A stretch of 64,000 bases of DNA, taken from NCBI GenBank assembly GCA_946965045.2, contig OX337236.1, forward strand, positions 310,001-374,000. The letters are read 5' to 3'. A program made the position numbers and the translations under genes. Of this stretch, positions 1 through 25,049 are shown piece by piece. The DNA is from Epithemia pelagica. Lineage: Eukaryota > Protista > Bacillariophyta. The first letter of the stretch is position 1. Each line of letters begins with the position of its first letter. Below the pieces are notes generated by a model. It ran no database searches. It was not told the origin of the DNA and was given only the letters and a program-made list of their open reading frames with translations.

Positions 1-615
1 ACTGGGAGTTCTCTCCCCGAACTTAGAGGACACACGAAAAAGGCGAATGGGAAAAGTGATCTCGTAATCGGAAAGAAAGTCGAGCTACAGGTTGCGCCCG
101 ATCCCTATGACTTTGCTTTTGGTCTCATTGAATTGAAGCAAGATATTTTCAACCTGAATAAGGGACAGAATATTTTGGAACTGGCGTCTCTTGCAACAAT
201 AAGCCGAGTTGGAAAGAATGTTTCTCTGTTGGCAACGGACTGCAACACGAAATGGGAGCTATTCTGGTTTGAAGACGACAAGACGATCGTTCGTGGGGTT
301 TATCGCAGCGGCCGCAAATGCTTGGAAGATTTTCGGAAGTTTCTGGTGGGTGCAGAGAGCCGCGTCCTCCGTCCTCCACCCAAGCAATCGCGCCTTGTGC
401 TCCCGAATTTCGAAGAGCATAATGAGGATGATATTGACCCGGACGATGAACAAAATATGGATGGATTTGACGTGGATGATCCCAAAACAGCGGCATTAGA
501 ACGCCAGGGGCAACTCGGTGTTTTGGCCGACTATCTTGGCGATCTGTACGGCGCACGCCCTTCTGTTCCATTTTGGGCAATGGCTGAGAACACCTGCCCC
601 GATTATTATGTGTAG
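1..615 (+). CDS. 5'-truncated Crinkler-like protein with putative PD-(D/E)xK restriction-endonuclease-fold domain
   Basis: Frame 1 is open from base 1: ...GKSDLVIGKKVELQVAPDPYDFAFGLIELKQ...QNILEL...LATDCNTKWELFWF. The SD...ELK...Q spacing fits a PD-(D/E)xK core, followed by an acidic tail. The start lies outside the window. Confidence 0.55.
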   Translation, partial: TGSSLPELRGHTKKANGKSDLVIGKKVELQVAPDPYDFAFGLIELKQDIFNLNKGQNILELASLATISRVGKNVSLLATDCNTKWELFWFEDDKTIVRGVYRSGRKCLEDFRKFLVGAESRVLRPPPKQSRLVLPNFEEHNEDDIDPDDEQNMDGFDVDDPKTAALERQGQLGVLADYLGDLYGARPSVPFWAMAENTCPDYYV

Positions 616-658
616 TGTCAGCGACGACACTTGGATTCGCTACTCTAATCCATCTTTC

Positions 659-860
659 GAGCTGCTTTTTGGTGGTTGGTTTGGAGACAACAATTCACAA
701 TGCTGTTTGGATTTTTCGCCACATATTCTATGGATCATCTTATCTGAGAGATGATGAATGTGAATGCTTGTCAAAGGCCCTTGTCGTGGCTATCCATTGA
801 TAATACACAATTAGAGAATGTGAGAGTAATAAGGAAAATGACAATACAACCCAAGTTGGC
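659..860. repeat. ~200-bp dispersed direct repeat, copy 1
   Basis: gagctg..ttggagacaacaattcacaatgctg..atctgagagatgatga..gaatgcttgtcaaaggcccttgtc..gatacacaa..tagagaatg..acaatacaacc recurs at 1471-1695. Confidence 0.85.
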
Positions 861-21694: not shown

Positions 21695-21898
21695 GATGGC
21701 GATTCGAAAAAATGAGAGACATGGTGTGGAGAAAGAAAATGCATCCGACGACGTCCGTACGTCGGCCGCTCCAATCGTACGCCGACCTCACGCCGCATTA
21801 TGCAACACACAGCAAAACATCGTCTTGAACCCAAGGCACACAACCAAAGAAGCAGACAGCGAGGGTCTATTCCAACACAGCAACGCAGTATCATCATC

Positions 21899-22648
21899 AT
21901 GTCGGAAGAACCGGACAAGGTCCCGGACGAGGAGGCGGATGTGGCCGCCATGTTGGATTTGTCCAAAAAGAAGAAGAAGAAAAAGAAGAAAACCAAAAAA
22001 GACGAGGGCGGCGGCGATGCTGCCGAGGGCGAGGACGAAGGCGGGTCGGGCGGAGCCGGTAGTGGCGCCGTGAGTACGTCGGATCAAGAACGTTTGTTGA
22101 AAGAATTGGACCAAGCCCAGGAATTGGATGGCGAGCAAGGGGAACTGGATCGTCGAGCGGATTATACCTACGAAGAACTCCTCGATCGTGTGATTGATTT
22201 GTTACAAGCCAACAACCCCGATCTCATTGAAAAGAAACGTACCAAAATCAAACCACCGCAATTGCAACTTCTCAGTAGCAAAAAGACGCTGTGGGTCAAT
22301 TTTCAAGAGATTTGCAGCATGATGCAGCGCGAACCCCAACATGTGTATCAATTTTTCATGGCCGAATTGGGAACCGAAGGTTCCATTGATGGCAATCAAC
22401 GATTGATTATTCGGGGCCGGTATTTGGCCAAATACATTGAATCGCTCTTGCGTAAATATGTGGTGGAATATGTCACGTGCGAAATGTGTCGATCGCCTTC
22501 GACCGATTTGATTCGAGATCAACGCAGTCGTTTGTACATTTGCAAATGCCGCGAATGCGGCTCCCAACGCAGTGTCGCACCCATTCGGGCTGGATACCAT
22601 GCCACCTCTCGAGCCGACCGAAAAGCGCAACGAAATGCCAAGAATTAA
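21899..22648 (+). CDS. EIF2S2: Translation initiation factor eIF2 beta subunit
   Basis: Poly-Lys box DLSKKKKKKKKK, YTYEELLDRV, FFMAELGTEGSIDGNQRLIIRGR, zinc ribbon CEMCRSP...CRECGS. The ATG is at 21899. Confidence 0.95.
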   Translation: MSEEPDKVPDEEADVAAMLDLSKKKKKKKKKTKKDEGGGDAAEGEDEGGSGGAGSGAVSTSDQERLLKELDQAQELDGEQGELDRRADYTYEELLDRVIDLLQANNPDLIEKKRTKIKPPQLQLLSSKKTLWVNFQEICSMMQREPQHVYQFFMAELGTEGSIDGNQRLIIRGRYLAKYIESLLRKYVVEYVTCEMCRSPSTDLIRDQRSRLYICKCRECGSQRSVAPIRAGYHATSRADRKAQRNAKN

Positions 22649-23242
22649 GCAAGGTTCCAGGGACTGCCGTTTCGATAGCATTCTCACAAACGGTGGCCAT
22701 CGTCGCGTGCCGTGGCATGATAATTCTAAACTACCTAGTCCTCATTTGATTCCAATCCATCAATGTATGTTTCCACTGTATCCATAGTCTTGTCTGTTTT
22801 GTCAGGGTAGGCCGCAATTTAGCTCTGTGTGCATGCCATGTGATGCGGACAGCATACCTACAACAAAAGTTGTTGGAAGTCGACAATCTGTCCTACTCAT
22901 GTGGAGAAGAGAGGTCGTTTCGTCGATCCTGGCCACCTACAATGCTGGTGTGAAACAAGATGGGGGCGCTCATTCTCGTCGACGAGATTCCTAGAATATT
23001 ATTATTATTATTGCCAACCCCCGTACAGTTGGGACAATCATGAACTGTTATGAACAAGAGAATGTACAAACTCAAATCCAGCGAGTTTCATTCTCCATTG
23101 ACAAGAGCGCGCGCGTCGTATGAAAAAGCTTCGAAATGTGTATCATAGTATTTTGAAATGGAAGGCAATAACACAAACTGAACCAATGGAACCATACATG
23201 GCTCAGGTGCCTGCATCATTTCTGTCTGGAACATTGTCCCAC

Positions 23243-25049
23243 TTAGGAGGAAATAGTGATGGTACGGACATAGTATCCCTCGGAGTCGTATTCTTCGTAA
23301 ATGTGACCCTTGGCACCCAAGAATGCACCTGTTCCACCCGTGATCACATAATGGCCCGTCGCCTCAGAGTCTTCGTGGAACCCCGAAAAGGACAACTTAC
23401 CGTGACAGCCAAACAAGTTAATGTACGTTCCTGCGCAATGCCAATATCCGCCATCGTTCAAACGTTCACAAAGCTGCACATCAAAGGCAACTTCCTGGTC
23501 ACGGTCGGCTTCCATGTACACTTCCTGTGCGTAGGGCAGACGCACTCCCTGACGATTGGACAAGTCGACGACGTTGTCCACCTTGGTGCCGTCGGGTTCC
23601 AGGCCAGGTCCTTGCCAGCGCTGCGCAATCTTGTAGATGCCGCTGCATTGCGACGGAGATTCCGGGGCAACTGGCTTTTCGGTAGGCTTGGAAGTAGGTT
23701 TGGCCACTGGCTTTTCTGTGGGTTTGTCGGTAGGCTTGAGAGTTGGTTTCGCCACTGGTTTCTCGGTGGGTTTTTCAGTAGGCTTGGGGGTTGGTTTCGC
23801 CACTGGTTTCTCGGTGGGTGTGTCGGTAGGCTTGGGAGTTGGTTTGGCCACTGGCTTTTCGGTGGGTTTGTCAGTAGGCTTGGAAGTAGGTTTGGCCACT
23901 GGCTTCTCGGTCGGTTTGTCGGTCGGTTTGGGTGTGGGCTTGGATGTCGGCTTCTCCGTAGGTTTCTCGGTGGGCTTGGATGTCGGTTGCTCGGTAGGCT
24001 TATCCGTGGGTTTGGACGTTGGTTTGGAAGTAGGTTTCTCTGTGGGTTTGGATGTAGGCTTCTCAGTTGGCTTATCCGTTGGTTTGTCGGTGGGCTTGGA
24101 CGTAGGTTTGTCGGTGGGCTTGGACGTAGGTTTCTCTGTGGGCTTGGACGTAGGTTTGTCGGTGGGCTTGGACGTGGGTTTTTGCGTCGGCTTTAGAGTC
24201 GGTTTGTACGTCGGTTTGCTCGTAGGTTTGGGTGACGGCTTTTCGGTGGGTTTCTCGGTAGGCTTCGAGGTTGGCTTTTCCGTGGGTTTTGCCGTTGGAT
24301 GGGGTGTCGGCTTTGCAACAGGTTTATCGGTAGGTTTGGGTGTTGGTTTCAGCGTCGGCTTTGCCGTTGGATGGAGTGTCGGCTTTGCAACAGGTTTGTC
24401 GGTAGGTTTGTAAGTGGGTTTATGGGTCGGATCGTAGCCCTGTACATGCGCGAAATAGAATTAGTTCTGGTGAGTCATGATGGTTATACAATGAAGATGA
24501 AGAATATGAAGAAATGCTCGTACCTTTCCTTTGCCATTGCCACCGTCATATTCGTAACCATCATAGCCCTTGCCTTTGCCATTGCCACCGTCATATTCAT
24601 AACCATCGTATCCCTTGCCTTTGCCCTTACCACCATCATATTCGTAACCGTCATAGCCCTTGCCTTTGCTCTGCTTTGAAGTGAAATTGAGTTAGAGATG
24701 TATTCGTCTCACCGCTTTGATGCTAGGAAGTTATGATTTACCTTCTCTTTCTTCCCTCCATAGTAGTATCCTTTTCCTTTACCCTTGCCTTTGCCCTTTC
24801 CTTTACTCTGATTACATGAAAAGCATAGAATGAGAAAACATGGGACATCTGTCGAATGGATGACTCTTGCAACTTGTGCCTTACCTGCAAGGTACGGTCA
24901 AACTCGGAATCTTCCTTAGTAACAACAGCGTCTAGGTTGAGCTCTCGGTTCTCGTTAGAGGGCACAAAATCCGTTGATGTCTTATCGACAGCAAGCTCGG
25001 CCATGGCCGCAGTTTGGAGGAACAGAGTGCAAACAGTGGAGAGCTTCAT
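23243..25049 (-). CDS. Secreted protein: signal peptide, GK/Tyr-rich repeats, KPT repeats, C-terminal dirigent/AOC-like barrel; four exons (25049-24885, 24807-24742, 24670-24524, 24439-23243), about 524 aa
   Basis: Three phase-0 GT-AG introns give one open frame. Exon 2 is SKGKGKGKGKGKGYYYGGKKEK. Exon 3 is (GKGKGYDGYEYDGG)x3. Exon 4 has KPTDKPTEKPVAKPT repeats followed by ...YVITGGTGAFLGAKGHIY. Confidence 0.85.
23670..24430 (-). repeat. Coding tandem repeats KPT(D/E/S)KP.. with 4-, 8- and 16-aa periodicity
   Basis: Repeated ggtttgtcggtaggcttg-type units inside exon 4. Confidence 0.9.

Follow-up and report, generated by a model that had tools for sequence, protein, structure and literature searches.

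The 64,000-nucleotide (nt) window of Epithemia pelagica DNA that we analyzed (contig OX337236.1, positions 310,001 to 374,000) carries on its minus strand, at 25049..23243, a gene of four exons separated by phase-0 introns, whose product of 524 amino acids (aa) joins several low-complexity repeat tracts to a folded C-terminal domain. Exons were translated and searched singly, and not as the joined 524-aa protein. The modular repeat architecture of this gene is real and well above chance. A signal peptide, REL and RTL motifs, a (KG)6-YYY stretch, three GKGKGYDGYEYDGG units, KPTx repeats and a C-terminal domain, all of which the initial annotation had described, are found on the minus strand where it had placed them (Table 1). 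It was also right about the phase of the introns, and wrong in assigning each module to an exon of its own, because the P-T-x-K rod (PT rod) and the C-terminal barrel share exon 4. The same plan is displayed by AC3362, a 666-aa protein of the diatom Amphora coffeaeformis (Buhmann et al. 2014, PLoS One 9:e110369; Table S1, File S1), so the architecture is not undescribed, as had been supposed, though the fold of the end domain went unrecognized there.

The splicing model draws its support from comparison, and this comparative backing is good. Retention of intron 1 or intron 2 shifts the reading frame, and retention of intron 3 brings in an in-frame stop. The DNA of exon 3 repeats with a period of 45 nt over 3.3 copies, and one repeat unit (GKGK/GYD) spans intron 3, the GYD of exon 4 completing the fourth GKGKGYDGYEYDGG unit. 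A paralog on C2 (L014, 66% barrel identity) follows an identical four-exon plan with introns at the equivalent three places, all of them GT..AG and in phase 0, and with exon lengths that are all multiples of three; its first three exons end in EERTLE, GGKKEK and NGKGK, and its fourth begins with GKGY, followed by the PT rod. The database entries for the locus are open reading frame (ORF) calls of 170-202 aa from genome assemblies, and the spliced model rests on comparison, not on transcripts, which leaves some room for the view that this is not a real spliced gene, with expression limited to the long ORF of exon 4, read from an internal start, or with the locus being a paralog in decay. We regard this as extremely improbable: the three introns are canonical, the repeat unit runs on across the third, and a paralog on another chromosome matches both intron positions and exon-end residues. 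The frame is free of stops and opens with an intact signal peptide, and the AC3362 complementary DNA, verified by rapid amplification of cDNA ends according to its authors, shows that full-length proteins of this type are made. Two plus-strand ORFs over the same region, 23120-24196 (358 aa) and 23637-24413 (258 aa), both of GLSVGL-type low complexity, were rejected as antisense shadows of the PT repeat.

Table 1. Features of the Epithemia pelagica gene (window positions) and of Amphora AC3362 (residues).
Feature	Position	Strand	Content	Basis
Exon 1	25049-24885	-	55 aa; MKLSTVCTLFLQTAAMA/ELAV..., NENREL, end FDRTLQ	translation
Signal peptide (exon 1)	24999..25049	-	MKLSTVCTLFLQTAAMA, A-x-A before Glu	translation; n-, h- and c-regions read by eye
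Acidic pro-region (exon 1)	24885..24998	-	REL; terminal DRTL/Q, an RXL-type processing motif just before the Lys-rich part	
Intron 1	24808..24884	-	77 nt, GTAAGG..CAG, phase 0	C2 paralog intron at matching place
Exon 2	24742..24807	-	22 aa, SKGKGKGKGKGKGYYYGGKKEK, i.e. (KG)6-YYY-GGKKEK	translation; GGKKEK end also in paralog
Intron 2	24671..24741	-	71 nt, GT..AG, phase 0	paralog comparison
Exon 3	24524..24670	-	49 aa; three and a third GKGKGYDGYEYDGG(K/N) units; fourth unit starts ...NGKGK	
Intron 3	24440..24523	-	84 nt, GTACGA..ACAG, phase 0	in-frame stop if retained
Exon 4, whole	24439-23243	-	398 aa plus stop; GYD, P-T-x-K rod, C-terminal domain	
Exon 4, first part	23672..24439	-	GYD, then 63 P-T-x-K units; the 64th, PVAP, runs into the next part	
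Exon 4, second part	23246..23671	-	142-aa eight-stranded barrel of predicted allene oxide cyclase/dirigent fold, four Cys, holds ITGGTGAFLGAKG	
Stop codon TAA	23243..23245	-		translation
AC3362 signal peptide	1-17			
AC3362 acidic region	18-94		end ESRAL	
AC3362 KG repeats	95-146		with Tyr	
AC3362 KPTY repeats	147-325			
AC3362 further KG repeats	326-355			
AC3362 Cys-rich module	356-386			
AC3362 DYKGKG and KGKGAPAPEPA repeats	387-537			
AC3362 end domain	538-666		labeled only "Y-rich" in the paper, fold unassigned there	

The N-terminal modules are those of a protein destined for the secretory route. Read by eye, the signal peptide (MKLSTVCTLFLQTAAMA) is of the plain secretory type with Glu at +1, and it is not plastid-type because no Phe occupies this position; together with the module translations it bears out the earlier view of a secreted modular protein. 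An R-x-L motif stands directly before the Lys-rich part both here (DRTL/Q, then SKGKGK) and in AC3362 (ESRAL, then WWSWKGKG). Elsewhere the pro-region likewise closes on such a motif, as EERTLE in paralogs, as ESRAL just before the KG repeats of AC3362, and as DTRTLRQ in the relative P0011. The Lys/Gly/Tyr tract that follows comprises about 71 aa, with 18 Lys and 12 Tyr, and a Pfam scan of exons 1 and 3 returned no match.

Silaffins and cingulins also have a signal peptide followed by an RXL-type site. They resemble the present protein in their Lys-rich and Tyr-rich low-complexity tracts, a comparison that the authors of AC3362 draw for silaffins and Y-type cingulins in view of the association with biosilica and its insoluble matrix. 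The likeness stops there: we found no sequence homology, the C-terminal domain here is folded, and Lys residues are spaced as K-x-x-x-K and K-x-K, not as the silaffin KxxK. Neither KxxK motifs, pentalysine clusters nor Ser-rich phosphorylation tracts, the marks of kinship to silaffins and cingulins, were present, and few phosphorylation sites are likely because the protein has few Ser.

The rod consists of 63 P-T/V/S-x-K units and a terminal PVAP, which makes 64 positions in unbroken register, and it matches the Pfam PT family at E 1.4e-50. All units have Pro at position 1, while 56 of the 63 have Thr or Ser at position 2 and 59 of the 63 have Lys at position 4; the variable position holds Glu, Ser, Asp or Ala, leaving the rod poor in Tyr. 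At the DNA level we detected repeat periods of 24, 36, 48, 72 and 144, with 0% indels except for two overlapping rows at 1%; since these periods are multiples of 12 and indels are close to zero, the four-residue register has been kept through repeated duplication. A structural counterpart is offered by TLP-4, a freshwater glycofibril seen by cryo-electron microscopy, whose sole protein is a linear chain of PT/Sxx tetrapeptides, in each of which 3,4-dihydroxyproline bears two glycans and the Thr/Ser after it a third, with a rise of 12.4 A per repeat (CryoSeek II, PNAS 2024, PMC11725842). PT/Sxx repeats are enriched in diatoms, and dihydroxyproline was first discovered in diatom walls (PMC11725842); such tetrapeptide repeats have been proposed as fibrils of diatom trails, and dihydroxyproline accounts for 17% of the amino-acid content of the adhesive material of Craspedostauros. 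The present rod is likewise an unbroken P-T-x-x array of 64 positions with invariant Pro. Extended as in TLP-4 it would measure about 79 nm (64 units of 12.4 A each), and it is probably O-glycosylated on hydroxylated Pro and on Thr. Unlike TLP-4, it has a Lys in every fourth position and is flanked on either side by folded or Lys/Tyr modules, and its glycosylation is presumed by analogy.

The C-terminal domain was approached from both sequence and structure. Alone, it scored 15.1 bits against Pfam Dirigent (PF03018, gathering threshold 29.1) and 14.0 bits against allene oxide cyclase (AOC; PF06351, threshold 31.2), below the threshold in both cases, and its PDB match to moss AOC2 had an E value of 6e-4. 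When 1.8 billion cluster representatives were searched exhaustively, 63 related clusters emerged, and a family profile of 40 aligned domains (A1) raised the PDB matches to E 4e-12 to 3e-9 for AOC chains, with P. patens AOC2 as the best, and to 1e-4 to 5e-3 for dirigent chains. Among the 40 family members, 28 match Dirigent weakly, 13 match AOC and 7 match AOC_like. An AlphaFold2 model built with the A1 alignment has eight strands and high scores (predicted local distance difference test 95, predicted template modeling score 0.87). Its top Foldseek matches were AOC, the pyocyanin demethylase PodA, pterocarpan-synthase dirigents, AtDIR6 and AbyU-type Diels-Alderases, with a probability of 1.00 for AOC, PodA and the dirigents. 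Alignment with VIA-align gave Z scores of 14.5 for the pterocarpan-synthase dirigent GePTS1, 14.0 for PodA, 13.7 for AtDIR6, 12.2 for PsDRR206 and 12.1-12.5 for the AOCs; the AOC/dirigent/Diels-Alderase group as a whole reached 12-14.5 over 108-133 residues, compared with about 8 or below for unrelated barrels such as streptavidin. The language-model neighbors of the domain are all AOC_like or Dirigent clusters. Because the AlphaFold2 model, Foldseek, VIA-align and the profile matches agree, we consider the predicted fold settled at the superfamily level as an eight-stranded antiparallel barrel of the AOC/dirigent superfamily, which upholds the dirigent/AOC-type barrel of the initial annotation. 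Structure leans slightly to the dirigents and sequence to AOC, and the assignment is therefore to the superfamily and not to a subfamily. Our search of the diatom and dirigent literature found no paper that assigns a fold to an AC3362-type end domain, and a search linking allene oxide cyclase to diatoms gave nothing relevant among the matches listed.

Conserved positions across the family are mostly Gly, the four Cys, W77, E66, R70, T114, D116, F117 and R136 (domain numbering), and E66, R70 and R136 lie on the barrel strands. The copy studied here departs from the family majority at three positions, with Q for E66, H for Y99 and A for D116. The Cys residues covary: C68 and C79 occur together in 33 sequences and are jointly missing from 7, and no sequence has just one of them; C9 and C89 occur together in 19 sequences and are jointly missing from 2, and 2 others have just one of them. 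This pattern suggests disulfides C9-C89 and C68-C79, which fits an extracellular domain.

AOC (PF06351) and AOC_like (PF18678, annotated mainly in bacteria) share the fold and are closest by sequence profile, with the AOC2 match given above. In the HMMER alignment to 4h69, the AOC motif Y-E-I-N falls over Y-K-I-A of our domain, so that its Glu, presumably the catalytic Glu23 of AtAOC2, is Lys here; across the family this column of AOC strand 1 holds K, E, T, S, V, Q or Y. The plastid targeting of AOC by a transit peptide is also missing, given a secretory signal with Glu at +1 and the disulfide covariation, and the AOC cavity Cys aligns with a Cys that is probably disulfide-paired here. On account of the missing catalytic Glu and of secretion, we rejected an AOC enzyme.

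Plant dirigents (PF03018; PsDRR206, AtDIR6 and pterocarpan synthases) share with our domain secretion, the eight-stranded antiparallel barrel, a GGTG.F motif and a long strand 1-2 loop. Our domain differs from them in its Pfam score below the threshold, its two putative disulfides and its fusion to a long repeat protein. The residue in GAxG that we take to be the counterpart of dirigent Arg141 varies across the family. To our knowledge, no monolignol chemistry is known in diatoms. The strand 1-2 loop of our domain is long and conserved (W19, P26, D27, G28, V31, G42) and sits in the place of the dirigent trimer loop, a likeness that is suggestive only. In dirigents, tight trimers form through this loop, which in PsDRR206 takes part in trimer formation, and the pocket pair Asp40/Arg141 is strictly conserved and absent in AOC (PMC4340379).

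The barrel belongs to a family that appears, from the sequences retrieved, to be diatom-wide, with stand-alone secreted barrels in centric and pennate species and long Lys/Tyr/PT fusions in raphid pennates; the present gene is a new member of this known, barely characterized family. The named relatives come without exception from diatoms: Epithemia clementina (many copies), two Entomoneis species, Seminavis robusta (annotated "expressed unknown protein"), Skeletonema marinoi, Thalassiosira minuscula and Amphora. Many members consist of a signal peptide and barrel alone, including those from Skeletonema, Thalassiosira, Seminavis and one Entomoneis, and the fusion of KG/Tyr and PT modules to the barrel is found in Amphora, Epithemia and the present genome, in varying module order. 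Two or three barrels occur in tandem in P0012, P0039, P0041 and P0058. P0039, a distant three-barrel relative, passes the Pfam Dirigent threshold at 47.8 bits, and a hydrophobic C-terminal tail in P0039 and P0041 suggests a membrane or glycosylphosphatidylinositol anchor. Outside the diatoms, the nearest sequences are proteins of ~140-170 aa whose annotation is allene oxide cyclase family (PF06351 and PF18678); where an organism is named, they come from bacteria. A word-index search for long relatives yielded one Epithemia protein and did not return AC3362, and the same search with paralog L005 as query gave no match.

The genome holds 13 barrel copies, of which nearly all have a PT linker and the majority have KG tracts; they are clustered on C2, C6 and C11, with singles elsewhere on C2, on C7 and on C9 (the gene described here). 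The first exon keeps the signal peptide and the R-x-L ending in L015, L021 and L022, and KG/Tyr tracts lie in one exon with the rod in L005, L006, L008, L011 and L012. Two copies ~20 kb apart, L002 and L003 (G000:C2:5825845-5826249 and 5845889-5846293), have identical 277-aa last-exon frames of PT rod and barrel, as would result from a recent segmental duplication within a tandem cluster, and a third copy at 5868802 on C2 has diverged. L022 (G000:C6:851500-853950, oriented 755-2168) keeps the signal peptide, EERTLE, the KG/Tyr exon and the PT rod, and its barrel breaks after ...CKGTFKVVE and resumes in another frame (L013:1432-1875); the break is an extra intron inside the barrel or the sign of a decaying copy. 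In a separate assembly of the European Nucleotide Archive, the megabase contigs behind P0002 and P0064 carry a 99%-identical copy of the gene end that deviates in a few residues near the C-terminus (GDIYEEYDSEAYY...ISY versus GHIYEEYDSEGYY...ISS), and this copy stems from another strain, a sister species or a haplotype. In P0024 of Epithemia clementina and in AC3362 (356-386), the barrel is preceded by a small module rich in Cys (C..H..C.HL.G.CCP...GVYL.CC), which has no Pfam match and is lacking from the present gene. The ORF of the downstream neighbor, at 21800-22648 on the plus strand, consists of a single exon, includes a poly-Lys tract and encodes translation initiation factor 2 beta (PF01873, E 3e-36); it has no evident link to our gene.

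Among proteins of this architecture, AC3362 alone has been studied by experiment, which showed it to be a component of the insoluble matrix associated with biosilica. It shares with our protein, in identical order, a signal peptide, an acidic pro-region ending in R-x-L, KG repeats with Tyr, a K-P-T-x rod and a C-terminal domain of ~130 aa. Read by eye, its end domain (...PDGT...GQTWSF.G.V.D...ELCTRINHGEMW.CEG.YVDLYGCSGQLTWEGPY...YTITGGTGDF...YSYRT) has in common with ours the motifs PDGT, ELCTR, W.C.G, LYGC.G, ITGGTG.F and Y.YRT. About four fifths of its residues are identical, again by eye, to those of P0017, which in turn matches our domain at E 4e-30 with 39% identity; through this proxy, the AC3362 end domain appears to belong to the same family as our barrel. 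AC3362 is longer (666 versus 524 aa), its rod reads KPTY instead of KPT(E/S/D/A), and between rod and barrel it carries the extra Cys-rich module and KGKGAPAPEPA repeats. Fused to yellow fluorescent protein (YFP), AC3362 localized to the valves except the raphe, and to the girdle bands; it survived hot sodium dodecyl sulfate (SDS), stayed in the ammonium fluoride (NH4F)-insoluble matrix, and was absent from adhesive trails (PLoS One 9:e110369). Its C-terminal tag was accessible to antibody, and the only SDS-extractable pieces were the C-terminal 150-250 aa (PLoS One 9:e110369), so the tag and fragment data agree with anchoring by the N-terminus and a head exposed at the C-terminus. The literature on AC3362 that we found amounts to the original paper and one review, and no later paper among those searched names the family or its fold.

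Taken together, we favor, with a probability of about 0.6, a diatom cell-surface structural glycoprotein of the AC3362 type, most likely residing in the insoluble organic matrix on the silica wall; the sequence features and the fold are the observed part of this reading, and the remaining steps are those we infer. The signal peptide would direct the protein into the secretory route, and the acidic pro-region would be cut off after RTL. The exposed Lys/Gly/Tyr tract could then anchor the protein in the silica-associated matrix by charge, possibly with covalent cross-links, and the 63 P-T-x-K units would form a stiff extended stalk of ~80 nm. At its far, exposed end the disulfide-braced barrel may act as a head for assembly or for ligand binding, possibly as a trimer like its plant relatives, and not as an AOC. 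The options for this head are a node of a three-armed oligomer, the capture or conversion of a small hydrophobic molecule, and directed phenol coupling. Of the two roles that the initial annotation had offered, the wall or biosilica role gains indirect support from the localization of AC3362, and the mucilage or adhesive role loses ground with the absence of AC3362-YFP from trails.

Several points weigh against the wall-glycoprotein reading. The localization data come from Amphora AC3362 and not from the Epithemia pelagica gene, and the tie to AC3362 rests on a published sequence read by eye and on the proxy P0017, whose branch shares only ~39% identity with our barrel. Paralogs may differ in their destination. 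The rods are also unlike: that of AC3362 is KPTY, and ours, whose variable position is taken by Glu, Ser, Asp or Ala, is Tyr-poor. The formation of trimers, the glycosylation and the cleavage at RXL all belong to the steps deduced above, and the role of the barrel itself remains hypothetical.

The rod invites a different reading, in which it forms the core of a glycosylated, TLP-4-like strand for adhesion, trails or extracellular polymeric substances, with the barrel and the KG/Y ends as connectors. Besides the enrichment of PT/Sxx repeats in diatoms and their proposed place in trail fibrils, trail proteins are rich in Pro, Thr and Ser, the trail material is rich in dihydroxyproline, and the family is expanded in raphid pennates. 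We consider such an adhesive glycofibril unlikely, as AC3362-YFP was missing from trails and did not extend to the raphe region, the known trail-protein domains (CAA, vWA-like, GDPH) were not found in the parts scanned with Pfam, and a rod of 64 units is short next to trail proteins of thousands of residues. If the barrel rather than the rod is taken as the working part, the protein could be an exposed head that binds or transforms a hydrophobic molecule such as an oxylipin, a pheromone or a bacterial metabolite, held off the wall by the rod. AOC, PodA and the Diels-Alderases do as much with the same fold, the barrel interior takes up small hydrophobic ligands in every solved relative, the closest sequences outside the diatoms are the short proteins annotated as allene oxide cyclase family, E66, R70 and R136 are kept on the barrel strands in the family, and other diatoms secrete the barrel alone. 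This seems quite unlikely for the present copy, in which Lys replaces the catalytic Glu of AOC at a position that is variable in the family and the family-typical E66 and D116 are missing; the ligand, too, is hypothetical.

The same barrel underlies the self-crosslinking protein of the initial annotation, in which it would act as a dirigent that steers dityrosine or isodityrosine coupling of its own or neighboring Tyr tracts into an insoluble matrix, presuming Tyr phenoxy radicals made by a wall peroxidase or laccase. The fold and the best structural Z scores, to dirigent-type pterocarpan synthases, speak for it, as do P0039 with its score above the Dirigent threshold, the Tyr-rich tracts attached to the barrel, the resistance of the AC3362 matrix to SDS and NH4F, and the listing, by the field, of hydrogen peroxide-driven cross-linking of Tyr-bearing proteins as a possible, unproven route to such matrices. 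The oxidase partner and dityrosine are, however, only postulated, and the radicals on which known dirigents act are small and of the monolignol type. A number of diatom relatives have the barrel without a Tyr tract, and these stand-alone barrels, in Skeletonema, Thalassiosira, Seminavis and Entomoneis, speak against a role that depends on attached Tyr tracts. In addition, the family polar positions E66, Y99 and D116 are altered to Q, H and A in this copy, its Dirigent score lies below the cut-off (15.1 versus 29.1 bits), and the presumed Arg141-equivalent position varies across the family. Self-crosslinking is thus very unlikely in our judgment. We give an equally slim chance to the broader proposal that the barrel guides oxidative phenol coupling (Tyr-Tyr or Tyr to a wall phenolic) and so renders the silica-associated matrix insoluble. 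If true, it would be a dirigent-like system outside the land plants, acting on a protein matrix and not on lignans or lignin.

How the insoluble organic coat that also gives diatom silica its shape comes to be built is still an unanswered question; in 2021, a comparative proteome study held the chemistry of insoluble diatom matrices to be unknown and noted that it may involve peroxide-driven tyrosine cross-links. To this question our analysis adds a predicted fold for the AC3362-type end domain, a diatom-wide census of its family, and the likeness of the rod to the peptide core of the TLP-4 glycofibril. Anchor, stalk and head would thereby become concrete, testable parts of a protein that is a specific candidate for steering cross-links or capturing ligands at the diatom cell surface.

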